From Hemiscyllium ocellatum (lineage: Eukaryota): 64,000 nt of DNA. Positions 3,611 through 37,764 of the stretch are shown one piece after another (the stretch's first letter is position 1; each line of letters opens with the position of its first letter). The position numbers and the translations under genes are program-made. The notes under the pieces were generated by a model. It was given only the letters and a program-made list of their open reading frames with translations. It did no database searches and had not been told where the DNA came from. The DNA lies in NCBI RefSeq assembly GCF_020745735.1, contig NC_083426.1, positions 12,958,001 through 13,022,000 on the forward strand. The letters run 5' to 3'.

Positions 3611-3639
3611 CCAGTTGCTCAAGATCTCACCGCATTCCC

Positions 3640-4663: not shown

Positions 4664-4689
4664 TGTTCTGTTTTTCAATTCAGGCCTAG

Positions 4690-12155: not shown

Positions 12156-12195
12156 ATGAGTTTCACCCTCCTCTTGTCCATTGTTTTCCTATCAG
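12156..12195 (+). CDS. Gene 1 (CD300/pIgR-like inhibitory receptor) exon 1, signal peptide MSFTLLLSIVFLS
   Basis: ATG with A at -3 (aaacaATG), hydrophobic 13-codon leader, canonical donor tcag|GTAAGA, phase 1 matching the V exon. Confidence 0.85.
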
Positions 12196-14249
12196 GTAAG
12201 AAAGTCATGGTGTTTGGATTTTTGGGAGGTTTGGATATGTGTAGTTAGATTAGTCTGACTGATAAAGTATGATCAGCTGAAAATGTTGCAACATTGAGAG
12301 AGCTGCCAAGAAATGTATTCTACTTTCCAAAAGTGGTTTCTTTTTCAAAATCATCAATGATTGTCTTCAGAGAAAAAAGATTACCACATCTCCTATTTTA
12401 TGTACAAACAATACAATGAAATCTTAGTTTCACGAACTCAAATCTCTGCTTTATAACTTATTTACTATTAGTTGATTTAAACCAGGATGAGGTGAATTTT
12501 CTGACTGGACAGATTACTGCTTGTGCTGAATTAGTAATAATGCAACTTAAGAAGGGGTTTAAATTCTGTCGTTCAAAGCACTTTATATTGACTGACTTAT
12601 GCAATTGGTCATGAGGTTTTAGTTCATAGATCAGTCGACAGATACCAACCAAATTTGAATTAGAGCTTAATGCAAGGGGTTGTTTGAAATCATGATCAAT
12701 GTAGGGTGAATATTAAGTAAGATATTTTGTATTCATCACTTGAACATTCCAGTTCCTGTAACATACACCAGAACAAATCAAAGAAATAAAATATCTTGTT
12801 GTATTTTCGAATGTCTGTTAACGACATTGAGATTTTATTCTGGAACCTTTGAATAAACTTGCTTGGTGACAATGTTTAACATGGATATGAATCATTGCCT
12901 TTGGGAATCAATATGAATGTCTTAACTTATAAATTAATAAAACAGCTTTGTACTCATATTGACTAAAATTATTTAGCACTCGTGTGCTAAATAGATAAAA
13001 TCTTACAACTAATTGTTTGCATAAGTTACAAGTCTCTGACTTTTTATTTGTAGCTATTATTGATTTATTTAGCTCAGGTTTAAATTACAATGGATAACAG
13101 ACCACATTTGTTTATATATTTTACCACTAATAAACAGAGGACTCATTTAGTTCCACTTACATTGTTTTTCTGACTAGAGAATGATTCTATATTCCTCCGA
13201 TCCTAAAACCATCCCTAACCTAACCCTCCACACCACCACACCGAAACCAATCCTTCCAGGATGGTATTTGAAGACTTCTGCCAGACATAGAGTTGTTAGT
13301 TATGCAAAACAAAACTCCTATTAGATATATTGAGCTGATATCTTTCTCTGCCCACACTTATAAGCAAGTTGGGAAGCCCCCATCACCAGAAAATATAAAA
13401 TTAAGAAATGATGCACAGATATATTGTGCCTCCTTTCTCCATTATTCCTAGAAATTTCATTTCAATGTAAATGGGATCAATTCTACTGTACTTTAAAGAA
13501 CTAGGGCTCTGCAGAGCCAATGTATGTAAAGTTGGGACCATTTCAAGAGCCATTAACATTGAGAGTTATGTCAAAACACATAGAGACACTGTTCTGTCCT
13601 TTAGTTATGGAAGATTATAACAATATGAAAATTGATGCAAAAATATTGAATAAATTATTCTTTATACATTAAAGCTTTATATATTAAATTGTACTGATTG
13701 TCTCAATATGTTTGGCTAATAATGTGAACAAATGTCAAAGTTGGTTACAAAAGCAGTTTCACTTCTTGTTTCTTGAGCTCAATGTGACAAAATATGAGAA
13801 TGGCTAAGAAGAAACAAACTGTTCTGTGAATGCACCGCAATCTTATTTTGGTTCATTTAAACTGTGTCCAGACTCATGACAGGCAAAGCGTTCTAGGTGC
13901 AATCTGTGAGAAGACTGGAGCCAGCTCCATCTGTCCCAGCTCTGAATTTCTTGCTCCCCAGAACCAAGTCACTCATTCTAGAGCTGCCTCTGTTCCATCT
14001 CTGCCACTGAATTCTGCATCTGCTGTGTCAGTGCCATGACCTTCTTTGCGGTAAAATAATTCCAGTTCTACTTTTCTACATGCCTGAAGCTTTAGTGCTG
14101 CTCCATTACATCGCAGCAATATAAAGTGCCACATATCAGCTTGTCTGCAAAGATAAGGCCAACGAAATGAAAGTTTGGCAGCACCAGTGCTGAGCAGTTG
14201 AGTAACATGACATGCAGCAGTGCCAGTGGTGAACAGTCCCATCTCAGGC

Positions 14250-15130
14250 TGCAGGCTATGATATGCTAGGGTTCCCCATTGCTCGGCAATTAGACCACTG
14301 CTGTTCTTAATCCATATTAATGACCCAGGGCACAATTTTAAAATGTGCCGATGACACAACATACAGACACACTCAGAATTGTGAAGATGACAGTGATAGA
14401 CAACAAGAAGGCATTCACAATGGAATGGGCAGGCGGGTGTCATATGAAATTTAATACAGAAAAGTGTGAAGGGATTTGTTTTGGTATGAGGACTGCAGCG
14501 ACCATTGTTGACTATGGCAAGATAGGTTGTGGAACTGATTATTAGATGTTACAGAATCCTGGGCTTTACAAATAAATGAATAGTGTACTAAAGCAAGGGA
14601 GCTATGGTGAACCCGTTATAAAATATTAGTTCAGAATCAATTGGAGTGCCATGTCCAAATCTGGGAGTCTCACTTTAGGAAGGCTGCAAAGACATTTGAG
14701 GTGGTGCAGAAAAAATGAAAAAGAATAATTCCAAAGATGAATATCTATAGTAATGTGGACATGTTGGTATTGTTGTCTTTTAAGGAGTTTGAGAAGAGAT
14801 TAGGTAGAGATACAATCAAAAACATGAGGGATGTTAACAGCGTAGCTACAGAAAAACTGGACACTTTGGCACAGGAGCTGAGAACCATGAAGCATCAAAT
14901 TAATGCGAATGGCAAAAGAACCAAAGGTGACATGATGTAAAGCTGTTTTACAGCTTGTGATCAGAATCTGGATTGCACTGCCTGAGAACATAAAACAGGC
15001 ATGTCCAATCATAGCTTTGCCAAAGATCATTACCTGAAAAGAAATGAATTGCTGGACCATAAGGAAAGTGCAGTAGAGTTAAGCGCTGGGAAGCAATGAG
15101 CTAAATGGTCTCCTTTTGAGCAATGCATTC
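14250..15130 (+). mobile_element. Old, degenerate CR1 LINE RT/3' fragment (intron 1 of gene 1)
   Basis: Decayed ADDT / KFNTEKCE / QLECHVQ motifs. Confidence 0.6.
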
Positions 15131-15891
15131 TATGATTTAGTGAAGGTTCTGAAATCTCACATTGTAAATCTAAAGTGACAATGGATTGGAGATCAAGATT
15201 TGGAAGGTTAAGAGGATGAACTTTGGGGCCATTTGATTTGCTGCTCCTAGTACATTTTAGAATTATACTGAAGTAACAACAGGATCAATCTCACATTGAG
15301 GAACTATCATGCACTGAATGATACACCCAATTCACTTGGAATGTTTCTCTATCACAGTAACTCTTCCTTCAACCCTGGGGGCAAACTTTACTCTCTCACC
15401 ACTTTACCCATGCATTGTTCCATTCTCAAAATGTATGGGTTTACTGTAATACAGTCAAGCTTCACACCCCTGCTCCCAAATGTATGTTCCCTGTTGAGGT
15501 CTCATATGTCTGTATTGGACATGTTCACAACTCTAGACCCTTCAACTTCAATTAGTCTTAGAGCATGATATTGGATGCCATATCAAGTCTGTCCTCATAG
15601 ATTCTAAGTTGGCCCTTCATGGATTCTAACTTGGTAAGGGCATGGAGTGCCCTACCTGCTAACATAGTTAACTCAGCAGCATTAGGGAGATTTAAACAAT
15701 CTTTGGATAAGCATATACAGTGAGGTAGCAACAATGAGGAAGGACAATGAAGGAGACAGCCAGTATGAATGAAGGAGAGGAAAAATAATGTGGAACTCAA
15801 AAGAGAAGGGTATATCAATGTTAATGTACTTTTGTTTCTGCGAAGCGTAAAATATAATGTTTTAAAGTTTACTATGTTTTCACATTTACAG

Positions 15892-16227
15892 TTACGCACG
15901 CTTCAATTAGTGGACCAGGAGATAAAAGTGGACGCGTGGGAGAATCTGTCACAATCCAATGCAGTTTTGACACATATTTTAGAAATTATCAGAAGTACTG
16001 GTGCAAAGGCTACTACAAGAGAAGCTGTACTGTTTTGGTACAAACTAATAGCCCTGAAAAGAAAAGTCATGATGGCAGAATAAAAATTACAGTTGATAAT
16101 GCAAAAGGACAACTTACAGTACATATGGACCAGATAACGAAAAGTGATAAAGGATGGTACTGGTGTGGAATAGATAGACCTAACGTTCTGGATCCATTAA
16201 CTCCCATACAACTTAAAGTTCTTGAAG
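15892..16227 (+). CDS. Gene 1 exon 2, Ig V-set domain of CD300/pIgR/FcmuR type
   Basis: Acceptor tttcacatttacAG|, donor gaag|GTAAGG, 336 nt phase 1-1. Translation (V)THASISGPGDKSGRVGESVTIQC...QKYWCKGYYKRSC...DKGWYWCGIDRPNVLDPLTPIQLKVLE has the B-F cysteines plus the extra C-C' pair (KYWC-x7-C) typical of the family. Confidence 0.95.
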
Positions 16228-16527
16228 GTAAGGCACAAATATGTGTTTATTTGCTGCATATTCAATGACATATTTTTGTTCAGCGTAGGTTTATATAATT
16301 TGATGTATAAATTTGTTACATATTTTGCAAAATCTCTGCGATCCTGATTTATCAGTAAAGTGTTAAAATTATAGTTTGATTATGAGTCAAACAGGACAAC
16401 ATTACAAAACCATGTACTGCGTTTTGATCGTTCTAATCAAAATTTCATTCACTAAACATGTACCTTGGCACAGATAACGTGAAGCTATTAATGACCAAAT
16501 AATACTTTTATACATCATTTTGAACAG

Positions 16528-16564
16528 GTCGAAAGGATTATACTAAGGACAAGGAAAGACTAAG
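16528..16564 (+). CDS. Gene 1 exon 3, short stalk (G)RKDYTKDKERL(R)
   Basis: ttttgaacAG| acceptor, taag|GTAAAT donor; 37 nt, phase 1 to 2, exactly the bridge needed between the V exon and the TM exon. Confidence 0.85.
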
Positions 16565-16617
16565 GTAAATGACCAATTTATTTGAGCAGTGCATCTTGTA
16601 GATGGTACAAATAAAAA

Positions 16618-16790
16618 ACAGAAACTGCTGGAGAAACTCAGCAGATCTGGCAGCATCTGTGAAGAAAAAGCATAGTTAATGCTCAGACCTGAAACATTAG
16701 CTCTATTTTCTGTCCATAGATGCTGCCAGACTAGCTGAGTTTCTCCAGCAATTTCCGTTTTAGCTTGTTTCAGATCTCCAGCATCCATAG
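16618..16790. mobile_element. Palindromic PLE-derived repeat (family B)
   Basis: gctggagaaactcagcagatctggcagcatct ... agatgctgccagactagctgagtttctccagc inverted arms. Confidence 0.7.
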
Positions 16791-18482
16791 TTATTTAGCA
16801 TGTTGTAAGTGGTATACTCTACTGCCAATATGCGCTAGTGGTGGAGGGAGGGAATCATTGAGGTTATGGATGAGGTGCCAGTATGCAAGCTGTTTTCTCC
16901 TAGATGTGTCGAGACACTGCTGTATTACTTGTGTGATCTGCATCTATCTAGGCAAATGAATAATGTTCCATCATACTCCTGACTGGTGCCTTGTCCAGGT
17001 TAGGTTCTGGTCAATGGTAATGCCAAGGAATGATGATAAAATTGATAATACATAAATAGAAGATATCCCATTTTCAGCAGTTTAGTTAAATTCATGCACA
17101 GCTTCATTAAGGAAAAGACATTTTTTTTCCATCATACAATCTCTCTGTCCTATAGAATTCCATTGTGTTACTTAAAGCAATAATGCCTCAGTAATACATA
17201 AGGTAGATTTTAGTTGGTTTTGTGTGCAATGCTGGTTTCAGTATCAATATAATTACGTATGTGTGAGATTAACCATTTGTTCTAGACAGTCTTCTGTTAT
17301 GTATAGGGTGTAGCAAAGAAAGTGAAATTATGTCTCTTTTCTTGTCATAATTTTACAGTAAATTCTACTTCTAAGTTTAGATCTAAATTGAGACAGATGT
17401 GACGCTGTACAGAAGAAGGTCACCTGGCCTCTTGTTTTTATGTTGTTGACAACTGGTTTTTGTCCAACCATCTACACAGTTGCCTCTTTACGATTCTGCA
17501 TTTCTGATAAAGAACATTGTGTATATATTGGAAATGAAAATAATAAATTGGAATTCAATGTGCAGTGCCAACCCAAGTTTTCAATATGTGCTTCAAATAA
17601 ACAAAGCTCTTTGCTAGGAGCATGAATTCATTAGAACTATCCCCATCAGGAGAAAGGTAAAGTCACCATTGCCTACTACTCAGTCATTAGAAACAGACAG
17701 CTGGTGGTGGTTAAACCTGAGGATCACTTTCCCTCAGACAAGGGGAGATATTGAGAAGGAGAGTCCTTCATGGCAACCTCAGCCAATGACAGGAATTGAA
17801 CCCATGCCATTGACATCAGTACGTTGAAAGACTAGCTGTCCAGTCAGCTGAACTAAACCAAACAGCATTCCCTAGGACTAAACAGCAATGTGATTTAACC
17901 TATTACAATATCCTCAAATAACACCACTACATCAAACTAAGTTTGCATTTAAATAGCATCTCTAAAGTAACAAAGTGTCCCAGCATCCTTTGAGTCAACA
18001 TTATCAACCTAAATGTGACTTTGAGGAACATAAAAAAGATATTAGCAGAGCTGACCAGGAGGTTAGTCAGAGAGATTGGAGACACTGAGTAGCCAGATTA
18101 TAAAGAATGTAAATACCTTGGAAGGCCCTCAGAGAGATTGCAGAGATATAAAGGTATGATACTATAGAAAGAGTTGAAAACAAGGATGAGTATTTAAAAA
18201 GAAACCAGCAAAATAACTTACAGAATTACATATCTTAAAAGTACATTGTTAACCAATATCTACTACAATTTTAAAATTAGGAGCTTTAAGGAAATGTAGC
18301 CTTCCCACTATACTTTTAATTCAGCATTTTAGAAGTCAACCAAACTCTAGAACTGAAAATAAACCGTTTTCCAAAAAACATTTATAATATTCACCATAAC
18401 TCTCCTTAACAACACAACAACACAGTTTGAAATGGGAAGATAATTTTGTGGTTTAACAGATATGTGTTGATCTAGTTGATTT

Positions 18483-18789
18483 GGGATGGCACAGTGGCAC
18501 AGTGATTAGCACTGCTGCCTCACAGCGCCAGAGACCCAGGTTCAATTCCTGCCTCAGGTGACTGACTGTGTGGAGTTTGCACATTCTCCCTGTGTCTGCA
18601 TGAGCACCCTCCAAGTGCTCTGGTTTCCTCCTACAACCCAAAAATGTGCAGGTTAGGTGAATTGGCCTTGATAAATTGCCTGTAGTGTTAGGTGTAGGGG
18701 AATGGGTCTGGGTGGGTTGCACCTCGGTGGGTCAGTGTGGACTTGTTGGGCCGAAGGGCCTGTTTCCACACTATAAGTAATCTAATCTA
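18483..18789 (+). mobile_element. HE1-type SINE, full length
   Basis: A box, B box gggttcaattcc, tail gtaatctaatct, short atctagt duplication at the flanks. Confidence 0.9.
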
Positions 18790-20629
18790 GTATATTCCCC
18801 TGGTTGCTAATCGATCTAATACTCATGTAATCAATGCTTTCCTCTGCATGGTCTGGGAGTAACCACATGTGCCTGCCAACTGTGATTCACTGCTATTCTG
18901 TTTGTACAATGGTTAAGCGACAAAGTAATGTGGCTTAAAGCTCTTGTCTTACAAATACAGAAGAAAGTCCATACTGGGGCTTGCCTGATACTTACCAGAA
19001 TTAGTTAAGTACTGTTCAGTAAATGTACTGTTAGTTTAAATAGTCTGCAAATTATGTTATGTAGCCTGGAGTTGAGTTGAGGGACATGGGATTTGCTGGA
19101 CAAAAGAAAGAGCGAGATTCACTACTCTCTACTATTTTGACAATCGCACACTGTAATGGTAATGGAGTTACTGACCAGTTCTAGCATTCATTCTCCATCA
19201 GTTATCACTGGTGATGACGAGTAGCAAATCCCCAAGTATTGGGATATTGAACCATTCTCTTTGAGTTAATGTTAGAAAAGTTAATGTTGAGAGCTACTGA
19301 GTAATGCTGCATTTTCCAAACATTACTGAAATCAAACTATTTGTAAAATAGAGGGATTTATTTTTCATTGATGTGGTTCAGTTTTGTACACACTGAATGA
19401 TGAGACCAAAAATACACTTAAATTTTGGTAAATTAAAAAAATTTTTCAGAAAAGAGTTATGCTGTTTGTCTGATACTTCCTCTTTTCACTTACTAAGAGT
19501 AGACTGGCACGAATTTTAATTCATTAGTCATCAGGAAATAATGCAACATAATTAGAATTTTTAAAAATAGGAGTCAAGAGGAAGTAGCAGAAAAGCTGAT
19601 GGTCGGAATGTTCAACAAGACAAATAGTCGTTTAATGGTTTATACAAATTGGCATTCATAACAACAACATTTTATATTGATGTAGTACCTTCAATGTAGT
19701 AAAGTTGCCATAGTCCCAAAGGACCAGAGGTCTGTTCTCTCGTCAGAGATGACTAATGGTGGTTTAACCTGAGGGGCACCATGCCTCAGACAAGGGGAAA
19801 GATTGAGAATGAGGAGTTTTATGGTCCCTCATGTGATATGTAAAATATTTCCGGGCATTTAAGAGGAGTATTAACAGAGCCATAGTTTGAGATACAAGCA
19901 TTATTCATGTATATTATGTGGGTGCTGCTGTCTGGACCAGAATTTATTACCCATCCCTCGTTATCTTAAAGAAGATGGGGTGAGCTGCGTTCTTGAATCA
20001 CTGCAGTTCATATGCAGTATGAGGACCACAATGTCCATATGGAGGGGATTCCAGATTTTGACACAGCAATAATTAGGGAACAACAACACATTTCCAAGTA
20101 AAATGAGTGCCTCAAAGGGGAATTATGAAATATAGATTACGTGGCAACTTGAAGGTGAAGAGCAGTAGAGTTACAAAGAATTTTAATATTAAAGCCAAGC
20201 TCAATGTTATATTACCCAAGTTAGTTCTAGTGTTAATTACAATTAAGATATTTATTTCACCAGACACAGAGTAAAATAATTCCAAGAATTAGACAATGAC
20301 AAAATTGAAATAGAAAATGCTGGGAAACACTCAGCAGGTCAGGCAAAATCAATGGAAAGAGAAACAGAATTAATCTTTCAGGTGATTGAGCTTTCATCAG
20401 TTGATGAACAACGATCTGTTGTTAAACTGAAATAGTTGAATTAATACAGTGACATTAGATAATAGTCCACTCCATAACCCTAGCTTTAATATTAAACTTC
20501 TCTGAAAGACTTAGCAGGTATTGAAAAATGTTGCACTGTTCTACATTATTATCTGTTATGGTAAATGTGTGGATGATTACATTTGTCCTTAAACTCATAT
20601 CATTTCTCTCTGCTTTTACACAAACCAAG

Positions 20630-20730
20630 ACTTTTCCTAACGTTGGGAATAATCTTCGGAATTCTGATGGTAATGTTTCTTGGACTTGTGATCCTAATTG
20701 TCAAAAAAATAAGGAAATACAAAGCTGATG
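20630..20730 (+). CDS. Gene 1 exon 4, transmembrane LFLTLGIIFGILMVMFLGLVILIV-KKIRKYKAD
   Basis: Long AG-free pyrimidine tract ending ccaAG|, donor gatg|GTAAGT; 101 nt phase 2 to 1; 24 uncharged residues followed by a basic stop-transfer cluster. Confidence 0.9.
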
Positions 20731-23700
20731 GTAAGTGCTAAAATAAAATCAATTTCCATACAAAATAAACTTGTCTCTCAAACAAACTAAGCAAAAAAAC
20801 GTCCTGATGTGGAACAAATTTTAATAATTGTGTCTTGATTTACTATGGAGATCGTACCTACATCTGCACTTCAACAGAACGTGCATTTTTGTCAGGACAG
20901 AAATCTCCTTGTATTTACATTTCAACCTGGCACCAAGTTCAGTGAAGCACAGAGCCAAAAATGACGGTACTTCCTTTATCTCTTTGGAAGAATAGGAACT
21001 CTGTTGCAGCGCCCATTCACGACAATATAATGGTGACAGGATTGCCAGTAACATTGTGGCAATTTGTATGTAGTGCATAGCAACATGTTTTGTTTCTTGC
21101 TGATAATTCTAGAGTGTTTGGGAGTCATTTTAGCAACACAAGAGGTGATTTTATTTCTTAATTAAAAGGACCACTTGTTTGTATTTTCTTTATTTGTTGT
21201 GAGCTGAGAAGCAAAGTCATGTCCAGTTTGGTACTGGATGAAGAACTGAGACAATTATAATTTCTCAAACAAGTATGAAAAGCCAGATGTATGAATGAGC
21301 TATCAAATAACCCTTTTGTAAATAGAACTATCATTATTGAGTCAGCTGATAATAATCACATGCAGAATTGCAATTAAATTATCCAATTGTTATAGTCTTG
21401 AGTTAGATTCATTTAGAATAATTGAATAAGGCAGATATTCCTCAATCTCAAAGATGTATAAAAAACAAAAAGCGATTCTGTTTCTACAGCATTCTCAGAA
21501 CATCCTGAGAAACTTCATAACCACTGAATTGCATATAAAATGTTGTTACTGTAGTTAAGTAGGCCTAGGTAATATTAAAGCTAAGCTCAATGTTATATTA
21601 CCCAAGTTAGTTCTAGTGTTAATTACAATTAAAATATTACCCAAGTTAGTTCTAGTGGTTCAAGAACACAGCTCACCTAGGCAAGGACCTGCAAACTGCA
21701 AATTAAACAAATGACCAGGTAACGGTGATAATTATTAAAGAAGTCAGCTCACAAGTGTAAATCACACATATCGGTCATTTGTTGATGACATAAAGTGCTG
21801 GAGAAACTCAGCAGATCTGGACATATTTGTGGAGAAAGAACCAGTTAACAATTTGAGTCCAACAAGATTCTTCATGTCAACTCAAATCCTTCCAGGGAAG
21901 AGTCACACCAGATTCAAAATATTAACTCTGTTTCTTTCTATATGGATACTTTCCAGACCTGCTGAGTTTCTCTAGCACTTTCCAATGGTATTTCAGATGT
22001 CTAGCATTTGCAGTGGTCTCCTTCTATATTTAATGTATTGACAGCACTATGTTGCCATGGGGCAGCCTTTGAGTTTAATTATTTAATGCTCTGGGTGAAG
22101 ATTTGGACTGGTGCAATGCGCAATCTAAATGTTTGCAGTTGATTAAAGAGAATTTATGTTCTGTCAAATATTCTTCCAACCATCGGAAGGCTTTAATTAA
22201 AAAAAAGTATCTTAATCCATCAACTGTATTTGCCAAGGAAACAGCTGGGAGAAGGTTGAAACATGACAGACATAACATTGGAGAATAAGGAACTAAATGC
22301 AACTGCAAATAAGTGATGGTTCAGCTTACACTGACTTCAGGTTCTGGCTTTCAAAATGAAGGTGAGATTGTATGAGGTGGTCAGGAAATGGCTACAACTT
22401 GCTTTGATTAGCTTTGTAGTGTGTCTGCAAGGAGCTGGTAGAAGGTTATAAAATGAAGCCTACAATTTAACTTATGAGAAACTTGTGTATTGTAAGGTTT
22501 GTATTTATATCTGTCAGCTTTTTCTAGGAGTTGGTAGTCTACATGCAGACCTATCAGATGATACCATCAGTTTTTTTTATCCTGGTTTACTGTGTTTTGT
22601 ATGAGCTCTCTAATAGTTCAGATGGGTGGCCAACTCCCTTGTCTTATTCAGTAGGGGCAATATCCAAGTAGTGAGTGAGACCAAGTATCATTTGCAGATG
22701 TGGAAAGGAACATGTATTTTTCTATTAAGAAAGAGAAAAAAAACAAAGAGTTAGAAGCAGGCAGGCAGGCAGCATAATAATTGTTTAATCATTTAATCAT
22801 GTTTTATGCCCATAGTACTAACTGCACATTGAAATGGAATAGAATAGCCTTTATTGTCATAGCAGACAGGAGAGTATCAGGCTGTGGCTATCTGTACATG
22901 GACTATCCAATCATCCCTGCTTGTTCCTTATTACTAAAGAAGGCTCTTCAATTCCTTATGAACTATAACACTCCTTTATTGATAGCTGTATGTAGTAGGA
23001 TCTCAAATACAGCTCTCTAATGTAGCATGAAGACCTCTCTTTTCACACACTCATTCTACACTGGTGCCTTCAATCCTACAGATACTTGAACCATGTGCTC
23101 AGTTATTTCATGTTTTACACAATTCTCATTGTTTCTCCACTTGACAAGTATCTCTACTTGGTCTACTTTATTCCAGTAGTTTAAAATCTGGTTGAAGATT
23201 TGTAGCTCGGGTATCCGTTGTTCCCTAGCCAGGGAACGAAACGTTTGCAGCAAAAACTTCCAGCTCCAGTAGTTTATTCTTAATTGTTTACATTGTATTT
23301 GCAATCATCAACATTATTATTAATTTTCACTATAATCACATGTCTCCCCACCCTCTCAAAGTCCAAATCTCATAGGGCACAGCAATCTGGAACTCTCGGT
23401 TGCAAACCCAATCTTTTTTACTTGAGTTCAACACTAAGGTGATCATGCTGGACCACATCTGTAATAGTTTCATTACTCTGTACTCTCTCTGATGAAGTAT
23501 AAATGTGGCTGTCCCACAGCTTAAAATAACTATATTTGGTCTCACTTCTTCACTCAAGTAAGATTAATGTGTTCCTGTTCCTCCTCATAATACAGGATTG
23601 TGATTCTGAAGAAAGGTCTCTGGACTCAAAATACTAACTCTGCTTTCTCTCTACAGATGCTGCCAGACTTGCTGATTTTCTACAGCAATTTCTGTTTTTA

Positions 23701-24194
23701 TTTAATATTTCTCTGATGACAATGCCTTCTGACTTTCTTTTCTTTAACCAGACTTTTTGCCCCGGCTTTAAGACTGACCAGGTTTTCACCCTGTTGCTCT
23801 TTGCTGTCATTTTTCTCTAGTTGGTTAACCTCTTGTGTTCTTCAGGTGATTATATTTGGTCTGGGATTGTGTTCTAAAGTTAGTACAGTTTTAATGACTC
23901 CCCAATAACAATTCCAGTACTGAATAACAATTGTTCAGTAGGTAGATTATTGATCAGTAAGGGTATCAAGGGTTTGGGGAGAGGGCAGGAAAGTGGATGT
24001 TAGGATGTTGGATCAGCCATGATCCTATTGAATGGTGGAGCAGGCTTCATGGCCTATACTAACTTTCCAGCTCAGCGAGCCAACCTACATCCAGAACCTC
24101 AACCTGAGCTACAAATCTCAAAACTCACTAAGGCCTATTCTTTTTTCTTGTGGTTTTAATGGTGTTGTTCTCATATTGAGTAGAGTTAATTTTT

Positions 24195-24378: not shown

Positions 24379-24399
24379 TAGAGTTAATTTTTAATCATG

Positions 24400-25771: not shown

Positions 25772-27982
25772 ACAAAGAACAAAGAACAAAGAAAATTTAC
25801 AGCCCAGGAACAGGCCCTGTGGCCCTCCAAGCCTGAGCAGATCCAAATCCACTGTCTAAACCTGTCGCCCAATTCCTCAGCATTTGTATCCCTCTGCTCC
25901 CCACCTACTCATGCATCTGTCCAGATGCATCTTAAATGAATCTACCGTGCCTGCCTCTACTACCTCTGCTGGCAACACATTCCAGACACCCACCAGCCTC
26001 TATGTGAAATACTTGCCACGTGTATCCACCTTAAACTTTCCACCTCTCACCTTGAAAGTATGACCTCTCGTTACTGAATCCTTAATCCTGGGAAAAAGCT
26101 TATCTCTATCTACCCTGTCTATACCCTTCATGATTTTGGAGACTTCAATCAGGTTCCTGCTCAATCTACTTATTTCTAATGGAATCAAACCTAACCTACT
26201 TAACCCTTTCTTCATAACTAGCACCTTCCATACCAGGCAACATCCTCGTAAACCTTCTCTGCACCCTCTCCAAAGTGTCCACATCCTTTTGCTAATGTGG
26301 TGACCACAACTGTACACAGTATTCTAAATGCAGCTGAACCAATGTCGTGTACAATTGTAACATGACTTGCCAGCTCTTATACTCAATACCCCGTCCGATG
26401 AAGGCAAGCATACTATATGCTGTCTTGACCACTCTATCAACCTGTGCAGCAACCTTCAGGGTACAATGGACCTGAACTCCCAGATCTCTCTGCCCATCAA
26501 CTTTTCCCAAGGCCCTTCTGTTCACTGTATAATTTGCCCTAGAATTAGTCTTGCCTAAAGGCATCACCTCACATTTGCCTGGATTGAACTCCATCTGCCA
26601 CTTCTCTGCCCAACTCTCCAGTCTATCTATATCCTCCTGTATTCTTTGACAGTCCCTTATGCTTTCTGCTACTCCACCAATCTTTGTGTCATCTGCAAAC
26701 TTGCTGATCATTTATGGATATTACAAACAACAGTGGCCCCAACACTGACCCCTGTGGAACACCACTGGTCACCTTTCTCCATTTCAAGAAACTCCCTTCA
26801 ACTACTACTCTCTGTCTCCTGTTGCTCAACCAGTTCTTTATCCATCTAGCTAGAACTCCCTGCACACCATGTGACTTGTCTTTCTCTATTAGTTTACCAT
26901 GGGGACCCTTATCAAATGCCTTACTAAAGTCCATGTATCTACATCAACAGCCCTCCCTTCATTTATCAACTTGGTCACTTCCTCAAAGAACTCTATTAAG
27001 TTGGTAAGGCACGATCTCCCCCACACGAAACCATGTTGCCTATCACTGATAAGCCCATTCCTTTCTAAATATAAATCGATCCTATCCCTCAGTACTTTCT
27101 CCAGCAACTTTCCCACCTCTGACGTCAGCCTCAATGGTCTGTAGTTACCTGGAATATCCCTACTATCCTTCTTGTACAGGGGGACAACATGAGCAACCCT
27201 CCAGTCCTCTGGCACCTCACCTGTATTTAAGGATGCTACAAAGATATCTGTCAGGGCCCCAGCTATTTCCTCTCTCGCCTACCTCAGCAACCTGGGATAG
27301 ATCCCATCCGGTCCTGGGGATTTGTCCACCTTAATAACCTCTAGCCTACCCAACACAAATTCCCTACTTATGTCAACGTGATCCAGACTAATCAAACTTC
27401 TATCTCTAATTTCAACATTCATCATGTTCCTCTCCTCAGTGAATACTTATGCAAAGTAATCATTCGGAATCTCACCTATTCTTTCAGGTTCGACACACAG
27501 CCTTCCTTCGTTATCCTTTAGTGGAGCAATCCTTTCTCTAGTTACCCGCTTGCTTCTTATATAAGAACAAAATACTTTGGGATTCTCCTTAATTCTGCTC
27601 CCTAAAGCTATTTCATGACCCCTTTTAGCCCGCTTGATTCCTCATTTAAGACTTGTCCTACTCATCTGATATTCCTCCAGGGCCCATTCTGTTCTTAGCT
27701 AATTAGACCTTATGTAAGCTTGCCTTTTCCTTTTGGCTCGTTGTACAACTTCTTCTGTCATCCATAGTTCACGAATCTTGCCTTTCCTATCCTTCCTTCA
27801 ACGGGACATGCCTATCCTGCACTATCTTTAACTATCTTTGAAAGTCTCCTATATATCAAATGTGGACTTCCCTTCAAATAGCTGTGTCCAATCCACATTT
27901 CCCAGTTCCTGCCTAATTTTGATATAATTGGTCTTGGCCTAGTTTAGTACTCTTCCCTTAGGACCATTCTCATCTTCGTCTA
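25772..27982 (-). mobile_element. CR1/HER1 LINE, 5'-truncated, nested inside the Gypsy remnant
   Basis: Frameshifted RT: PEDWRVAHVVPLYKK, YRPLRLTS, DFSKAFDK, SGVPQGSVLGPLLF, KFADDTKIGG, HLEYCVQLWSPH; (ttctttg)n tail on the minus strand. Confidence 0.95.
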
Positions 27983-27999
27983 CGAAATGTGAAAATGTT

Positions 28000-28720: not shown

Positions 28721-30239
28721 ATAGTTGACTCACCTGGATGAACACCTGGTTCTTTTCTTTATTACTGTTAAAGAATTCCAATTATGTGGTTTTGCACTTC
28801 AGAATACTGTCAGTTCGTAGTTATGATGTGGAGGAGCTGGTGTTGAACTGGGGTGGACAAAGTTCAAAATCACACAACACCAGGTTGTCGTCCAACAGGT
28901 TTATTTGGAAGGAGAAAGTGAGGACTGCAGATGCTGGAGATCAGAATCGTGAGTGTGGTGCTGGAAAACACAGCAGGTCAGGCAGAGTCCAAGGAGCAAG
29001 AGAATCGACATTTCGTGCACAAGCTTGGTATCTCTTGCAAACAGTTTTAACCTTGAATCTTTGTTCTGGAGGATTTTTCCCCCGTTGTAACTTTACTTTA
29101 TGTTGGAATTTCAAGCCAACACGGTTACATGCACATTGAGATACTAGTCTGGAGTATCTAAGGCACACTGTAGCCTCTCAGACTGCTTTCTCCTTATCTC
29201 CAAAGAGAGTCTTCAACTCCTTATTTACTGTAAAACTCCTTAGTTTCCATCTGTACACAGTATGTTCTGAAATAGAGCTCTCTCCACATCCTCATTCATC
29301 ATTCTTGCTGATGTCAGAGTCATTTCATCAGTGATATTATTTTGATTTATACGACCGTCATGACAACAGCGAGGGAAATGTGAGACAGCCTCATGGTGAA
29401 AGGAAAAGGACACAAAACAAACAAAATGAGAGTGATGAAATAGAAAGAATGAAGACTGCAGAAAATGTCCCAGCTGTGCAATGCCTGTTTGTTTTCATGG
29501 CACAATAACTAGAAATGATTTGTGCACAATTGCGTTAACACAGTAACACTCGGCCTGCTGCACAGCCACACCATTTTAGAGGAAACATGGACTGGAGAAA
29601 ATCATTTCAAATCACCAACAGGAGGTAGCAACTTGTCACCCATTTCAGAAAGCATGTAGTTTGCATTTCTGTTGATTGGAAATTGATTAATTTCAATAAC
29701 AAGGAACAAATTTTTCCAATGGGAATGTTCTAAATTTAGCCTTGGAAGATAGCAGAGACAAGCCTATAGAAAAGCTAAAGCTCATGAGAAATATAATACA
29801 GTATGTTAATGTAAACAGAAAAAGTTAAACACTTTATCAAGAGCTAAAGACAAAAATAATTGTATTTAGTTTTACATTAGTGAACAGTGATTAAACAGTG
29901 AAGCAGGATTTATTATAAAATTCAATACAACTGCCTGACATAGCTCGGCAGTATTTTACCCAGCAACAAGTAACTAATATAAACCAGTTTTACATTCCAG
30001 TTTTCTTATATAATTAATTATGAAACAGCGGTTTAATTTTTTTTCTGCAACTTATGAAGTATGTACTCAATACTTTTCCAAAATTGCCTCATTACTCTCG
30101 CCTATCCTAATGTATTGTCTAATGTTGAATTAGGAAATCAAAAAGAGCAATTCAGTTTTAAGAAGCAGCATTTAATAAAAGTTGAAAATAGTTCTTCCTT
30201 CTGTTTTATTCATGATTTTTATGTTTGCATTTTTTTTAG

Positions 30240-30295
30240 ATAACAGAGAGAAGGAAACAACAATAGAAAATTCTATCCCAAAGTCAAACTCCGTG
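30240..30295 (+). CDS. Gene 1 exon 5, cytoplasmic (D)NREKETTIENSIPKSNSV
   Basis: tttttttAG| acceptor, cgtg|GTAAGG donor; 56 nt phase 1 to 0, links the TM exon to the terminal exon in frame. Confidence 0.8.
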
Positions 30296-31314
30296 GTAAG
30301 GCTACAACTTGTTGACAATGCTTTAATACTTGTGTGTTTTAATACTTGTGGAATCCATTGGCCTATGAAGTGATGTAAGGACACGATAGATATGCATGCT
30401 TTATGTATTCATCTGAAAGTCCTTCAAACCAGATATTTCAGAAGTCACGTTTAGAAACATTTCTACACACAGTCTTTGGGAAAAATTTAGAAATCTCAGC
30501 CAACAGCAGTTAATGCTAGTTCAATAGTTTATTATTAAATATGAAATTTTGCTAGATTTTTTTGGACCAAAGGAATAAAAGGAGTGACAGCAAAGTTGAG
30601 TACACAGGGAAAGTTTGCAGATCTAGGCCTGAATTTTATACTCATTTTACATGGTAGATGAGTGTGGCCCTTGCCCACATAATGGTTTTACCAGTATCCT
30701 AATGAAGGGCTTTTGCCTGAAACGTTGAATTTCCTGCTCCTCGGATGCTGCCTGACCTGCTGTGTTTTTCCAGCACCACTCTGATCTAAACTTTTACCAG
30801 AATCAGGGAAGGCACTGCACAAGTTGCTAGTCCAGTAGTTGTTCCCTTATTAAATGAAACATATTGATATATTGAAGGCAATTCAGGGAAGGCTCACGAG
30901 GATGATCCCCAGTATGGAGGGATTGTCTTATGGCTAAACAGCTTGTGACTCCAGTCACTGGAGTTGAGAAGAATGAGAGGTGATCTCATTGAAACATCTG
31001 GGATTCTTAAGGGACGTGACAGGGTAAATACTAAGAGAATGATTCTCCTCAGCATAGAATCTCTACAGAGGTGGAGGCCATTCTGCCCATCAAGTCTGCA
31101 CCTATCCTCCAAAGAGCATCCCACTCAGATCAACGCCACCCACCCTGTCCTTGCACCCCATATTTACCATGATTGTTCCACCTAGCCTGCACATCCCTGG
31201 CTCCTAGGGCAATTTAGCATGACCAATCCACCTAACCAACACATCTTCAGTTCTTTACTACAGGCCCCCAACACATCTTTACTACAGGCCCCCCAATAGC
31301 AGCAGGAAGATTGA

Positions 31315-33903
31315 AGAAAGCATAGGTCAGCAGATTTTGGAAAAGTGTGAATGTAGTAGGGTTGTTGTAATGGGTGACTTTAACTTTCCCAATATTGATT
31401 GGAACCTCCTTTGAGCAGATGGTTTGGAAGGAGCTGTTTTTGTAAGGTGTATTCAGGGGGGTTTCCTAACTCAGTACTTTGACAGGCCGACGAGGGGAGA
31501 GGCCATTTTGGATTTGGTGCTCGGCAATGAGCCGGGGCAGGTGTCAGATCTTCTGGTGGGAGAGCATTTTGGTGATAGTGACCACAACTGCCTCACATTC
31601 TACATAGCTATGGAGAAGGAGAGAAGCAGGCACAATGAGAGGATATTTAATTGGGGAAAAGGAAACTATGATACTATCAGATGTGAGTTGGGAAGCATGG
31701 ACTGGGAGCAATTGTTCCATGGAAAGGGCACAATAGATATGTGGAAACTGTTTAAGGAACAGTTGTTGCAAGTGATGCACAAATGTGTTCCTCTGAGACA
31801 GGCAAGAAGGGGTAAGATAAAGGAACCTTGGATGACGAGAGCAGAGGAGCTTCTCGTCAAAAGAAAGCTTATGTAAGGTGGAGGAAGCAAGGGTCTTGCT
31901 CAGCTCTAGAGGATTACAGGCAGGCGAGGAAGGAGCTCAAAATTGGTCTGAAGAGAGTCAGGAGAGGGCACTAAAAGGCTTGGCAGGAAGGATTAGGGAG
32001 AATCCAAAGGCATTTTACACATATGTGAGGAATAAGAGAATGATCAAAGAAAGAGTGGGGCCAATCAGGGATAGCATAGGGAACTTGTGTATAGAGTCTG
32101 AGGAGGTAGGGGAAGCCCTAAATGAGTTTTTTGCTTCTGTCTGTACTAAAGAAAAGGACCTTGTAGTGAACGAAACCACTGAGGAGCAGGTAAGCATGCT
32201 GGAACAGATAGAGTTTGAGGAAGCTGATGTGTTGAAAATTGACAAACATTAAGATTGACAAGTCACCAGGGCCAGACCAGATTTGTTCTCGGCTGCTTTG
32301 GGAAGTGAGAAATGTGATTGCTTCGCAACTTGCGAAGATCTTTGCATCCTCGCTCTCCACCGGAGTCGTACCTGAGGACTGGAGGGAGGCAAATGTAATT
32401 TCTCTCTTCAAGAAAGGAAATAGGGAAACCTCTGGCAATTATAGACCAGTCAGTCTCACGTCTGTAGTCTGCAAGGTGTTAGAAAGGATTCTGAGGGATA
32501 GGATTTATGACCATCTGGAAGAGCATGGCTTGATTAAAGGCAGTCAGTACGGCTTTGTGAGGGGCAGGTCATGCCTCACAAATCTTATTGAGTTCTTTGA
32601 GGATGTTACTAGATAAGTTGATGAGGGTCAAGCAGTGGATGTGGTGTATATGGACTTCAGCAAGGCATTTGATAAGATTCCCCATGGTAGGCTCATTCAG
32701 AAGGTCAAGAGGAATGAGATACAGAGAAATTTAGCTGTCTGGATACAGAATTGGCTGGTCAACAGAAGACAGCAACTGGTAGTGGAAGGAAGATATTCTG
32801 CCTGGAAGTCAGTGGTGGTCCACAGGGCTCTGTCCTTGGGCCTCTACGGTTTGTAAATTTTATTAATGACTTGATGAGGGGATTGAAGGTTGGGTTAGTA
32901 AGTTTGCAGACGACACAAAGTTTGGAGGAGTCGTTGACAATATAGAGCGCTGTTGTAGGCTGCAGCGGGACATTGACAGGATGCAGCGATGGACTGAGAG
33001 GTGGCAGATGGAGTTCAATCTGGATAAATGCAAAGTGATGCATTTTGGAAGGTCGAACTTGAAAGTTGAGTACAGGATTACTCAAGAAGAAGTCCTGAAG
33101 AAGGGCTCATGCCCGAAACATCGATTCTCCTGCTCTTTGGATGCTGCCTGACCTGCTGCGCTTTTCCAGCAACACATTTTCAGTACAGAATTAAAGACAG
33201 GATTCTTGGCGGTGTGGAAGAACAGCGGGATGTTGGTGTGCAGGTACATAGATCCCTTAAAATTGCCACCCAGGTGGACAGGGTTGTTAAGAAAGCATAT
33301 GGTGTTTTGGCTTTCATTGACAGGGGGACTGACTTAAGAGCCATGAGATCCTGTTGCAGCTATATAAAACTTTGGTTAGACCGCACTTGGAATACTGCAT
33401 CCAGTTCTGGTCGCCCTATTATAGGAAAGATGTGGATGCTTTGGAGAGGGTTCAGAGGAGGTTTACCAGGATGCTGCCTGGACTGGAGGGCTTATCTTAT
33501 GACGAGAGGTGGACTGAGCTCGGACTTTTTTCATTGGAAAAAAGGAAGCGAGGAGACTTAATTGAGGTGTACAAGATAATGAGAGGCATAGATAGAGTTG
33601 ATAGCCAGAAACTTTTTCCCAGGGCAGAAATGGCTAACACGAGGGGTCATAGTTTTAAGCTGTTTGGCGGAAAGTATAGAGGGGATGTCAGAGGCAGGTT
33701 CTTTATGCAGAGAGTTGTGAGAGCATGGAATGCGTTTCCAGCAGCAGTTGTGGAAGCGAGGTCATTGGGGATATTTAAGAGACTGCTGGACATGTATATG
33801 GTCACAGAACTTTGAGGGTGCATTCATGAGGATCAATGGTCGGCACAACATCATGGGCTGAAGGGCCTGTTCTGTGCTGTACTGTTCTATGTTCTATGTT
33901 CTA
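31315..33903 (+). mobile_element. CR1/HER1 LINE (endonuclease C-terminus + RT), degenerate
   Basis: GDFNFPNIDW, ILDLVLGNEPGQV, DSDHN, PEDWREANV, DFSKAFDKIPH, HLEYCIQFWSPY; (ttctatg)n tail; PLE piece inserted at ~33077-33180. Confidence 0.95.
33095..33122 (+). ncRNA. Minimal hammerhead motif (family A) in PLE piece nested in CR1
   Basis: CUGAAGA-aGGGC ucau GCCC-GAAA-CAUC; insertion flanked by gtacaggatta / gtacagaatta. Confidence 0.7.
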
Positions 33904-33954
33904 CCTCTGGACTGTGGGAGGAAACTGGAGTTCCCGATGGAAACCCATGCAGAC

Positions 33955-33978
33955 GGGGGGGGGGGGGGGGGGGGGGGG
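33955..33978. repeat. Poly-G run
   Basis: ~24 consecutive G inside a SINE fragment. Confidence 0.9.
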
Positions 33979-35317
33979 ACGTGCAAACACCACGCAGTTA
34001 TCCAAGACTGGAGTAGAACCCAGATCAATGGCACTGTGAGGCAGCTGTGATAGCCATGGTGCTACTGTCCTGCTGAGAACCAGGGGGCATAGTCACAGAA
34101 TAAATGGGGGTGAATTTAAGACTGAGATCTTCTGTCAGAGGGTTGTGAGTCTTTAGAACGACTTGGTGCAGAAAGCAGTGGGGGCAGAGTACTTGTGTAT
34201 ATGTAAGACTAAAATAGATCGATTCTTGATCAGTCGGGGAATCAAGAGTTATGGAGAAAGGGCTGGAAAGTGGACATGAGGAATGTTAGATCAGCAATGA
34301 TGATTTTGAATGGTGCAGCAGGCTTGAATGGCCTCTTCCTATTTCGTATGGTGTTAAGGTTTTAATAGAGTACCTTAAATGGACAACTGGTAAAAATGTA
34401 GCATAGCCAAAGCAGGAAACTAGGAGGGGTGGGTAAAAAAACAGTAAAAATGACAGTAATATTTGGAAATGAATGTACCAGCCCTACCAGACTTCCATTT
34501 TGAAACATGCAACATGCGTTGACTAGTGCACATCACTTACCAGTTTCATTAGTCTTTACTTCTAGATGGCAATTAATACCCATTAAAAGGCCTCATCCCA
34601 TTGCTGTCTGGATTTACCCATGGGTGCACAGCAGGGACCAGCAGGCATTTTCTCCCTGGCTGGGTATTGGCAGGCAGGGAGTATCCCTCAAATAAAAGTG
34701 AATTACAATAGAAATCTGAAATGGGCACAGATAATGCTGGAGAAACTCAGTAAGTCTGGCAACACCTGTCGAGAAAGAAACAAAGGCTCCTCCTCAGACC
34801 CTCACAAGCTCGCGAATGGGGTGGGGGGGGGGGGCATCCACTCTAATACTGCTTCAGGACTTTCTCTAATGCTGCTCTGGGTCACAAACTGCTGAAAACT
34901 CCTGGACACATGGTAGAAATATTATCAGGAAAATACAACTGCTGCTTGTCAACTTACTCCCTTGATATAGAGAGTCCTGCAGGTAGAATGGTGATTTGTA
35001 AGAATAGTGAAAACTCTATCTCTTCTCCACCTTAGAACTCTCAACTCCAAGATTCCTCCCTCTTTTTCTGATGCTTACCTGTTGTGCATGTTTCCAAGCT
35101 AGGCCTGATCTAGGTTCTGAAGCTTAGGCCTCTTCTTAGTTGGAAACAACTTTGAAAGGGAGATATATGGCCTGTAAATATGCAACCAGATCAATTGCTA
35201 AGATATCTTTATGGAGTCAAACAACTAAAGCAAGGCCCTTCAACCCATTGAATTCTCAAATTTTAAACCGTGAAGGAAGCCATGCCAATTCTGGTCATTC
35301 TAATCAAACCTTTGCAA

Positions 35318-37140
35318 CATGTAGGTCAGGAAGGCAAAAACAGGACATGAGATAGCTTTGGCAATAGAGTTGAGGAGAATCCAAAAAGATTCTAGAAGTA
35401 CATTAAGGGCAAAAGAGTAACTAAGGAGACAAAAGGCCCCATAAATATCAAAGTGGCCTCCTATGTGTGGAACCACAGGATATGGTTGAGATGTTAAACA
35501 AATATCTTGCATCAGTATTTAATGTGCAGAAGGACACGGAAACTGGGAACTTGGGAAAATAAATAGTGATGTCTTGAAAAGTGTTCATATTACAGAAGAG
35601 GAGATGCAGGAGGTCGTAAAACATGCAAAGGTAGATAAATTCCTAGGAACTGATCAGGTTTCCCAGAACTTTGTGGGAAGCTAGGGCAGAGATTGCTGGG
35701 CCCCTTGCTGAGATATTTATATCATCAATATCCATGGGTGAGGTACCAGAAGACTGGAGGTTGACTAATGTGGTGCCATTATTTAAGAAAGGCTGCAAGG
35801 AAAATTCAGGGAACTATAGACCAGTGAGCCTTACATCAATGGTGGGTTAGTTGTTGGAGGTGATTCCAAGGGATAGAATTCACATGGACTTGGAAAGGCA
35901 AAGACTGATTAGGGATAGTCATTGTGGCTTTGTGTGTGGTAAATTATGTCTCACCAACTTGGTTGAGTTTCTCAAAGAGGGTGACAAAGAAGATTGATGA
36001 AGATGGTAAACATTGTCTATAGAGACTTCAACAAAGTGTTCAACAAGATTCCACATGGTAGACTGGTAAGCAAGGTTAGATCACATGGGATCCAGGAGGT
36101 GTTATCCAATTGGATACAAAAATGGCTTGAAGGTAAGAGAGGGTTGCTTTTTGGACTGGAGGCTTGTGACCAGCAGTGAGCCATAAAGATTGGTGCTGGC
36201 TTCACTGCTTTTTGTCATTTATATATTTGATTTGGATAAGAATATTAAGGTATGGTTCATAAGCTTGCAGATGATATGAAAATAGATGGTGTAATAGACA
36301 GTGAAGAAGTTTATCTCAGAGTACAATTGGACATTGATCAGACAGGCCAATGGGCTGAGGTGTGGCAGATGGAATTTAATTTAGATAAATGCGAGGTGTG
36401 ACATTATGGTAAGGCAAATTCAGGCAGGACTTATACGGCTAACGGTAGGGCCCTAGGGAGTGTTGCCGACCAAGGAGACCCAGGGGTGCAGATGCTTATT
36501 TCCTTGAAAGTGGAGTCACAGGTAGACAGGGTGGTGAAGGAGTTGTTTGCCATGCTTGCCCTCATTGGTCATAATATTAGTAGAGGAGTTGTGATGTCAT
36601 GTTGCAGCTGTACAAGACATTGGTGAGGCTGTTTTTTTGAAAACCTCATACAACTCTGGTTGCCCTTTAATAAGAAAGATGTTGTTAAAGTTGAGAGGGT
36701 GCAGAAAAGATTTATAAGGATGTTGCCAGGAATGGACAGTTTGAGTTACAAGGAGAGGATGGGGTTATTTTTCCTTGAGCATCAGATGCTGAAAGGTAAC
36801 CATATAGAGGTTTATAAAATCATGTCAGGCATGGATAGGATAAATAACCAAAGTCTTTTTCCCCGGGGTAGGGGAGTCCAAAACTAGAAGGCATAAGTTT
36901 AAGGTGAGAGGGGGAAAGATTTTAAAAAGGATGTGAGGGATAACTTTTTCACGTGAGTGCATGCATGGAATGACCTGGCAAAGGAAATACAACTATAATA
37001 TTTAAAAGGTATCAGGATGAATATGTATGAAAGGTTTTAATGGGATATAGGCCAAATGCTGGCAAATGGGTGGAGGTCAGATTGAGATGTCTGACTGGTG
37101 CTGACAAGTTGGATGGAAAAGTAGGGTCTGTTTTCATGCT
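35318..37140 (+). mobile_element. Degenerate CR1/HER1 LINE RT region
   Basis: PEDWRL.NVVPLFKK, DFNKVFNKIPHGRL, KLADD, RVQKRFIRMLPG remnants. Confidence 0.9.
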
Positions 37141-37572
37141 GCATAAATCTATGACTTGAACTCTGACTCCTGGTCCAGAGGCAGGGCATTACCACTGCAC
37201 CACAAGGTCCTAACAATAGGCAGTAACTGATAATTTTCCTCATATGTGGATGCCCAAACTTTAACATGGTTTCTGCCCATTCTTTGAACCAGGGACTCTC
37301 TTCATGCAAAGCAACCATGATGGCCACTTGTTCAGGAACCCTTGATATAATAGCAGCACTGGAATGGTTAATATTCTTTCTAAAGACAAAGTTAATAATT
37401 AACACAAGGAGCAGTTTCTTTGCCTATTTACTGATAAGAGTTTCACAGCGAGCACCTTTTTTAAACTAAAAAAGTGCTAATTTATACCTGACCTTTCCAT
37501 TTATGTGTTTTTATGATGAATTGACTCATTCCTTCACTCTCCTCTATCATATCACAAACACTTTATCTTCAG

Positions 37573-37764
37573 TTATCAAAGGAGTTGGAAGAAGGAGTTA
37601 CGTATGCCACGGTGACGATTCAGCCCAATAATCACCCTCAAGAGGACTCTGCTGCTCACGAGAAGGTGAAAACCTCCAACAGTCAGGAAGCAATCAAGCC
37701 ATCTGTGGCCGAGCCTCCTACTTCAGAACCAATAGAGTATTCGACAATTGTATTCAAAAAGTAA
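37573..37764 (+). CDS. Gene 1 exon 6 (terminal), cytoplasmic tail with two ITIMs (VTYATV, IEYSTI)
   Basis: ctttatcttcAG| acceptor; LSKELEEGVTYATVTIQ...EPIEYSTIVFKK* open to TAA at 37762-37764; both motifs fit (I/V/L/S)xYxx(I/V/L). Confidence 0.9.
   Translation, partial: LSKELEEGVTYATVTIQPNNHPQEDSAAHEKVKTSNSQEAIKPSVAEPPTSEPIEYSTIVFKK

Follow-up and report, generated by a model that had tools for sequence, protein, structure and literature searches.

A stretch of 64,000 nucleotides (nt) of the shark Hemiscyllium ocellatum (NC_083426.1, positions 12,958,001 to 13,022,000 of the forward strand; referred to below, as a whole, as the window) was analyzed for a receptor gene of the CD300/pIgR type that an initial annotation, made from the sequence alone, had placed in it. 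The gene was rebuilt from the sequence and its features are listed in Table 1. Its six exons have lengths of 40+336+37+101+56+192 = 762 nt and encode 253 amino acids (aa) without an internal stop. All five introns are of the GT-AG type, giving ten canonical splice sites, and the cumulative exon lengths give the phases 1,1,2,1,0. The initial annotation had claimed six GT-AG exons with these phases and 762 nt coding for 253 aa, and every element of that claim was found in the sequence. Exon 2, which encodes a variable-type immunoglobulin (V) domain, carries KYWC-x7-C and YWCG and matched the Pfam V-set family with E = 3e-15.

Table 1. Features of the receptor gene and of its surroundings; coordinates are positions of the 64,000-nt window, and all parts of the gene lie on the + strand.
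Feature	Position	Strand	Description
Exon 1, coding part, 40 nt	12156..12195	+	ATG at 12156; most of the signal peptide; donor CAG|gtaaga; next intron phase 1
Exon 2, V-set Ig domain, 336 nt	15892..16227	+	Acceptor ...tttacag; donor GAAG|gtaagg; phase-1 introns on both sides
Exon 3, stalk micro-exon, 37 nt	16528..16564	+	13 charged residues with the conserved DKERLR motif; next intron phase 2
Exon 4, 101 nt	20630..20730	+	Transmembrane helix (~20631-20702), then basic stop-transfer KKIRKYK; next intron phase 1
Exon 5, cytoplasmic micro-exon, 56 nt	30240..30295	+	Conserved ENSIPKSNS; next intron phase 0
Exon 6, coding part, 192 nt including stop	37573..37764	+	Acceptor ...tcttcag; cytoplasmic tail with both inhibitory motifs; TAA at 37762-37764
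Inhibitory motif 1, VTYATV, Tyr201	37597..37614	+	Fits consensus; GVTYA core in 13 of 14 elasmobranchs (AVTYA in Rhinoraja); Tyr invariant
Inhibitory motif 2, IEYSTI, Tyr246	37732..37749	+	Fits consensus; five residues from the C-terminus
G-rich run	38010..38060
Candidate AATAAA	38391..38396
Second receptor gene, leader region	42900..43067	+
Second receptor gene, V exon	58659..59000	+
Reverse-transcriptase fragment	26295..27215	-	Intron 4
Reverse-transcriptase fragment	32239..32613	+	Intron 5
Reverse-transcriptase fragment	48472..49059	-	Intron of the neighbouring gene
Low-complexity stretch	~2500-4900	+

Only two uncharged hydrophobic 19-mers occur in the + frames of 16.2-37.6 kb; the one starting at 20631 is that of exon 4 and falls inside an AG...GT segment with fitting phases. 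For the two micro-exons, full enumeration gave 105 (exon 3) and 816 (exon 5) phase-compatible open AG...GT segments. Because chance yields this many candidates, phase fit is weak evidence for either micro-exon, and phase compatibility was dropped as proof of them. The initial claim that the phases join without adjustment is thus true, but lends little support to exons 3 and 5. It is homology that singles out the two segments given in Table 1, through tblastn with orthologous proteins and through DNA identity with the whale shark. The tblastn matches of the orthologous proteins in the window fell exactly on the six proposed exons. On these sequence comparisons the predicted six-exon model is correct.

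A protein search with the V exon against 1.8 billion representative proteins returned 2,493 matches. One of these matches, a 638-aa zebra-shark model, has within its first 253 residues the stalk, transmembrane segment, exon-5 segment and tail of the present gene, arranged alike, and a search with these 253 residues led to annotated proteins of 252-253 aa in several species. Those of the whale shark, sevengill shark and white shark have exactly 253 aa and are named "CMRF35-like molecule 1". The manta and sawshark orthologues have 252 aa, the latter carrying the name TMIGD3-like, and those of skates and the electric ray have 276-279 aa. The alignment to the 253-aa forms was gapless over the full length, with 80% identity to the whale shark and 69-70% to the white shark, sevengill shark and sawfish. 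Identity to the skate orthologues was 53-56%, and the sole gap corresponded to one extra exon in skates. The highest V-domain identity (82-88%) was found in a bamboo shark of the same family.

The whale-shark locus (L001) showed six orthologous exons of identical lengths, and their translation was exactly that of the RefSeq protein. DNA identity between the two species was 92.5% in exon 1, 87.5% in the V exon, 97.3% in exon 3 and 97.9% in exon 5, with a synonymous divergence of 0.18. The thorny-skate locus (L002) revealed the same exon layout plus the extra exon. A skate RNA contig (L003, 1,276 nt) has an uninterrupted open reading frame (ORF) of 277 codons and, aligned to the 24-kb skate gene, falls into seven blocks matching these exons, indicating that the orthologue is spliced as predicted. 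The extra exon of rays and skates encodes 24 cytoplasmic residues and lies between the transmembrane exon and exon 5 (L002:28813-28885; L003:547-619). Its use depends on the isoform, as seen in the X1 and X2 forms of sawfish and manta, and no counterpart of it was found in the 64-kb window.

Fourteen elasmobranch sequences have in common the four cysteines of the V domain, the DKERLR stalk, the transmembrane helix, ENSIPKSNS, the tyrosine of the first inhibitory motif and a C-terminal EYST. The gene is most probably this orectolobiform shark's orthologue of the elasmobranch protein called 'CMRF35-like molecule 1' in RefSeq. The members of that orthogroup (whale, white and sevengill shark, sawfish, manta, electric ray and skates) share 53-80% identity with it and differ from it in the alternatively used 24-residue exon of the rays and skates. 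At least ten other sharks and rays already have a predicted orthologue, and the gene is a further CD300-like member.

The two halves of the protein differ in their rate of change. In pairwise comparison with the whale shark the ratio of nonsynonymous to synonymous substitution (dN/dS) was 0.29 for the stalk and transmembrane region and 0.32 for the tail, and about 1.05 for the V domain, the last value resting on 108 codons only (window 15892-16227 against L001:14768-15103). As judged from these sequences, the signalling half is constrained and the ligand-binding half is fast-changing. The V-domain ratio could reflect either diversifying pressure or relaxed constraint.

Transcription was assessed from the share of sampled sequence words present in sequencing runs of the same species. 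Two small, probably RNA, runs (X1 and X2) contained 0.59 of the words of 15800-16400 and 0.43 of those of 37273-37872, against about 0.54 and 0.47, respectively, expected if only exons were represented. Genomic DNA runs contained 0.92-1.00 of the words of both intervals. Since chance alone would not let runs this small (150-250 million letters) span a shark genome, transcripts are the likeliest source of the words in X1 and X2. The gene is probably transcribed, with orthology and the word shares as the grounds for its predicted splicing in this species.

These results bear on whether the locus could be a copy that is not expressed or is decaying, its open frame having survived by chance. A V-domain dN/dS of about 1 would be in keeping with decay. 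Against this, all six exons keep an open frame, none of the ten splice sites departs from the canonical form, DNA identity of the micro-exons with those of the whale shark is 97-98% at a synonymous divergence of 0.18, the dN/dS of the tail is 0.3, and the word shares in the two probable RNA runs are exon-sized. Taken together, these observations make a decaying copy very improbable.

The concern that automated annotation could build this gene wrongly was borne out in its relatives. Two RefSeq models named 'polymeric immunoglobulin receptor-like', from the zebra shark (P0002, XP_059509194.1) and the cloudy catshark (P0184, XP_072338018.1), contain the orthologue as residues 1-253 and 1-257, respectively, fused to a downstream multi-V gene. 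For the bamboo shark, two models, P0013 with 180 aa and P0155 with 214 aa, are truncated or have exons missing.

The predicted protein begins with a signal peptide (residues 1-17, predicted cleavage after ...VTHA), followed by the V domain (residues 18-125), in which Cys37-Cys105 is the canonical pair and Cys51-x7-Cys59 the extra one; all four cysteines are invariant in 17 sequences. A charged stalk of 13 residues leads to a transmembrane helix (residues 139-162) that contains no D, E, K or R, and to a cytoplasmic tail of 91 residues. No N-glycosylation sequon was found in the ectodomain, stalk included, and a Pfam search of the tail and transmembrane exon gave no match. The stalk of mammalian CD300f is long and rich in Ser, Thr and Pro, whereas that of the shark consists of these 13 charged residues.

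In a sequence search of the PDB the best single-domain matches were CLM-1/CD300f (2.7e-20), human CD300f (3e-16), and CD300c and CD300a (3e-15), followed by NKp44 (5e-9), pIgR D1 (6e-9), T-cell receptors (1e-7) and Fc mu R (1e-5). An AlphaFold model of the V domain, built from 17 sequences, had a predicted local distance difference test score (pLDDT) of 93. Its best structural matches were mouse CD300lf (TM-score 0.89-0.92, root-mean-square deviation (rmsd) 0.9 A, 34-36% identity) and human CD300f, and then pIgR D1, CD300a and TREM2. The top 10 matches among solved structures were all CD300 members. Among Swiss-Prot models the top 12, and 19 of the top 21, were CD300 members, with TMIGD3 in 13th and 21st place; after the CD300s and TMIGD3 came pIgR D1 and Fc alpha/mu R, and T-cell-receptor and antibody V domains were far behind. 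Sequence and modelled fold together make it very likely that the protein is a type I membrane receptor with a single CD300f-like V domain and an extra C-C' disulfide.

This result supports the initial assignment of a four-cysteine V domain of the CD300/pIgR type, as the domain is nearest to CD300f both by sequence and by fold and did not group outside the CD300/pIgR set; the short stalk and uncharged transmembrane helix described there were also recovered. An activating receptor of the TREM/NKp44 type was rejected, given the uncharged transmembrane helix and the 91-residue tail with inhibitory motifs, and the TREM and NKp44 structures rank below those of CD300 and pIgR.

The V domain is of the subtype that pIgR shares with CD300, which raises the possibility of a polymeric-immunoglobulin receptor, or a precursor of one, carrying shark IgM across epithelia. 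In line with it, the multi-domain pIgR chains have the highest summed sequence scores in the PDB search, and pIgR D1 matches the model at a TM-score of about 0.8. The scores of single domains, on the other hand, favour CD300f over pIgR D1 by 11 orders of magnitude. Furthermore, in a tree of 80 V domains, evaluated with three clade tests and built without true mammalian CD300A-H sequences, the pIgR domains of birds and teleosts lie on the other side. The shark gene encodes one V domain, whereas pIgR has two in teleosts and five in mammals, and its tail bears inhibitory motifs instead of transcytosis signals. A pIgR identity was ruled out by the single V exon between leader and stalk together with this tail, and an IgM-carrying receptor or its precursor is the least probable of the alternatives considered. 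According to surveys, cartilaginous fish have neither pIgR nor Fc receptors (PMC4016189; PMC13337447), in agreement with the remark in the initial annotation that no clear elasmobranch pIgR is known. With its single V domain and its inhibitory tail, the present gene does not fill this gap.

Among cartilaginous fish, the skate MDIRs (modular domain immune-type receptors) were described by Cannon et al. in 2006 as a multigene group with activating and inhibitory members. A paper that cites this work says that their Ig domains resemble those of CD300, TREM/TLT and pIgR (PMC3031540). No protein named MDIR occurred among the matches of the protein searches made here, and no paper on this particular orthogroup was found in the literature. 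The novelty implied for the gene was overstated, since orthologues of 252 or 253 aa were already predicted and skate receptors resembling CD300, pIgR and TREM had been published in 2006.

The cytoplasmic tail carries the two immunoreceptor tyrosine-based inhibitory motifs (ITIMs) that had been proposed for it. VTYATV and IEYSTI both match the consensus and are conserved in 14 species, in which both tyrosines, 45 residues apart, are invariant. Two positions ahead of the second tyrosine the residue is I, L, M or T, depending on the species. Combined with the uncharged transmembrane helix, the two conserved motifs give good reason to regard the protein, on its sequence, as an inhibitory-type receptor. 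By analogy with established ITIM biology, from which the phosphorylation and phosphatase steps are taken, engagement of the V domain beside an activating receptor would allow Src-family kinases to phosphorylate Tyr201 and Tyr246. The paired phosphotyrosines would then recruit the tandem-SH2 phosphatases SHP-1 and SHP-2, and activation would be damped.

Mammalian CD300f combines inhibition through ITIMs with activation through Grb2, PI3K or SAP-type adaptors, and the shark receptor might have such a dual function. Some of its orthologues have features that would suit this. In five other species the C-terminal motif is TEYSTV, which fits the consensus of an immunoreceptor tyrosine-based switch motif (ITSM), and most rays, the white shark and the sawshark have a third tyrosine, set in the Grb2-type motif Y-x-N. 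The third tyrosine is missing from this shark and from the zebra, whale and sevengill sharks; the present protein has the plain ITIM IEYSTI, has AAHEKV where the Y-x-N tyrosine would stand, and has no YxxM motif. Dual signalling is therefore unlikely for this protein, and an inhibitory receptor is the preferred reading.

The comparison with CD300f (CLM-1, IREM-1, CD300LF) bears also on the ligand. Both are type I proteins with a single V domain holding a C-x7-C disulfide, an uncharged transmembrane helix and ITIMs, and the CD300f structures are the closest solved ones (TM-score 0.88-0.92, rmsd 0.9-1.2 A, 32-36% identity). The shark differs in having a third complementarity-determining region (CDR3) longer by one residue, no N-glycosylation sequon in the ectodomain, and just two tyrosine motifs, without YxxM, in the tail. 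Mouse CD300lf holds a phosphocholine head group between its CC' and CDR3 loops, in a pocket with Tyr34, the Cys36-Cys44 bond, Gln41, Arg42, Trp89, Asp98 and Met100 (PMC6166816). The spacing of Cys51-Cys59 in the shark equals that of Cys36-Cys44, and most pocket positions appear to be kept. Taken in the same order, the shark residues are Tyr, the equivalent disulfide, Lys, Arg and Trp, followed by what are probably Asp and Leu, in a register derived from Foldseek ranges and motifs and not from a residue-by-residue alignment. By analogy with CD300f, and more tentatively than the assignments above, the ligand may be a membrane lipid head group.

The closest chondrichthyan relatives suggest a context for such an inhibitory receptor. 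The V domains that group most closely with it in the tree (support 95/85) are those of proteins, about 170 aa long, of the elephant shark, the starry smooth-hound and the electric ray, and of one unnamed contig. These sister proteins (P0079, P0100, P0133 and P0144) have a single V domain, an Arg in the transmembrane helix and almost no tail, as would be expected of activating receptors that signal through adaptors. The thorny skate has, 9.8 kb upstream of its ITIM gene and on the same strand, the last exon of a gene with such an Arg-bearing helix (L002:152-244), an arrangement that suggests a tandem activating/inhibitory pair. The shark gene would then be the inhibitory half of a paired-receptor system. 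Because of the Arg-bearing sister clade and the upstream gene of the skate, this is the best-supported mechanism.

Several observations weigh against an inhibitory, CD300f-like receptor acting in this way. The RNA nature of runs X1 and X2 is a guess, and splicing in this species rests on orthology and word shares, not on junction-spanning reads. The V-domain dN/dS of about 1.05 relative to the whale shark is at odds with a strictly invariant ligand surface. In the putative lipid pocket the register within CDR3 is inferred, with this loop one residue longer than in CD300f, and Lys replaces Gln41. Finally, the 45 residues between the ITIMs exceed the spacing of about 25 residues of some tandem-SH2 ligands.

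A further question is that of orthology with tetrapods. The gene could be the cartilaginous-fish orthologue of tetrapod TMIGD3, a CD300-like gene found at the locus of the adenosine A3 receptor gene, and not of the mammalian CD300 cluster, the ITIMs of TMIGD3 having been lost in mammals. The best full-length match outside elasmobranchs was a caecilian protein (P0162) with the same layout and a tail containing GVTYSTV and a C-terminal TEYSTI. Over 70 residues it is 97% identical to a model of that species named 'adenosine receptor A1-like', and its own best match is a marsupial TMIGD3 (47%). Given the human TMIGD3/ADORA3 locus, we take P0162 to be the caecilian TMIGD3. Mammalian TMIGD3 has KYWC[KR]GY[YF] and a CDR3 that is likewise longer by one residue (R-x4-D-x-M/L), TMIGD3-like is the name given to the sawshark orthologue, and the V-domain tree sets TMIGD3 and the caecilian protein sister to the shark clade.

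The support for that sister group is, however, just 85/35, and approximately unbiased (AU) tests rejected neither of two alternatives, an all-elasmobranch clade that excludes TMIGD3 (p = 0.59) and a grouping of TMIGD3 with the CD300/pIgR-like sequences of tetrapods (p = 0.48). The GY[YF] motif is present in teleost pIgR D1 too, and tails of the VTYSTV type are common among teleost CD300/pIgR-like proteins. A tblastn search of the 64-kb window with the adenosine-receptor part of the caecilian protein found nothing significant. TMIGD3 thus resembles the shark receptor in its CD300-like single V domain, its KYWC[KR]GY[YF] and its CDR3 length, and its caecilian member keeps both tail motifs; the mammalian protein differs in its longer stalk and in having no ITIMs. 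That the single-copy ITIM receptor and its Arg-bearing sister genes are the cartilaginous-fish counterparts of tetrapod TMIGD3 is possible, though doubtful on this evidence.

The surroundings of the gene were also inspected. About 5 kb downstream lies a second receptor gene, with a leader region and a V exon of the CD300/pIgR type that contains KYWCKGKWRFSC and YWCG. The orthologue of this V exon in the zebra shark, catshark and sevengill shark is the first V domain of multi-V 'pIgR-like' genes; the remaining exons of the second gene appear to fall outside the window. The same arrangement is present in the whale shark, whose cluster lies on NC_063356.1 near 10.74 Mb. Only further V-set genes were found in the window and in the 10-kb flanks in whale shark and thorny skate. 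In Narcine bancroftii, a five-domain 'pIgR-like' protein (P0001, XP_069798182.1) has a D1 identical to D3 and a D2 identical to D4, which points to a very recent internal duplication or to an assembly or annotation artefact.

Three decayed ORF fragments of reverse transcriptase (Pfam RVT_1) lie in introns of the two receptor genes (Table 1), and a large part of the length of these introns is due to such decayed copies of retrotransposons. About 250 bp after the stop codon, in the probable 3' untranslated region or flank, is a run rich in G (GGGGGG..., broken by single T and A letters), and a candidate AATAAA lies further on. Near the start of the window is a long stretch of low complexity; translated in the + frames it gives repeats of THSLTHSHPLPHSL-like units, it coincides with a strongly negative GC skew (-0.28 to -0.45), and it is probably a degenerate tandem repeat.

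The outcome is a verified model of one gene from this shark's cluster of CD300-like receptors; this model, the deep orthology, the fast V domain set against a fixed tail, and the TMIGD3 question are what is new here. It has no bearing on the missing shark pIgR. It also adds a caution on public annotation, in which two species have the gene joined to its neighbour and a third has it cut short. Sharks, rays and skates have retained, as a single gene that is still recognisable, a CD300f-like inhibitory receptor whose tail is fixed while its V domain changes quickly, and together with the adjoining activating-type relatives it offers a convenient entry to paired innate receptors at the base of the jawed vertebrates. 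If the doubtful link to TMIGD3 were true, the little-understood gene of the TMIGD3/ADORA3 locus would descend from the ancient inhibitory half of a paired CD300-like system, and the ancestral TMIGD3 would have been a receptor that still bears its ITIMs in a caecilian and lost its signalling tail in mammals.

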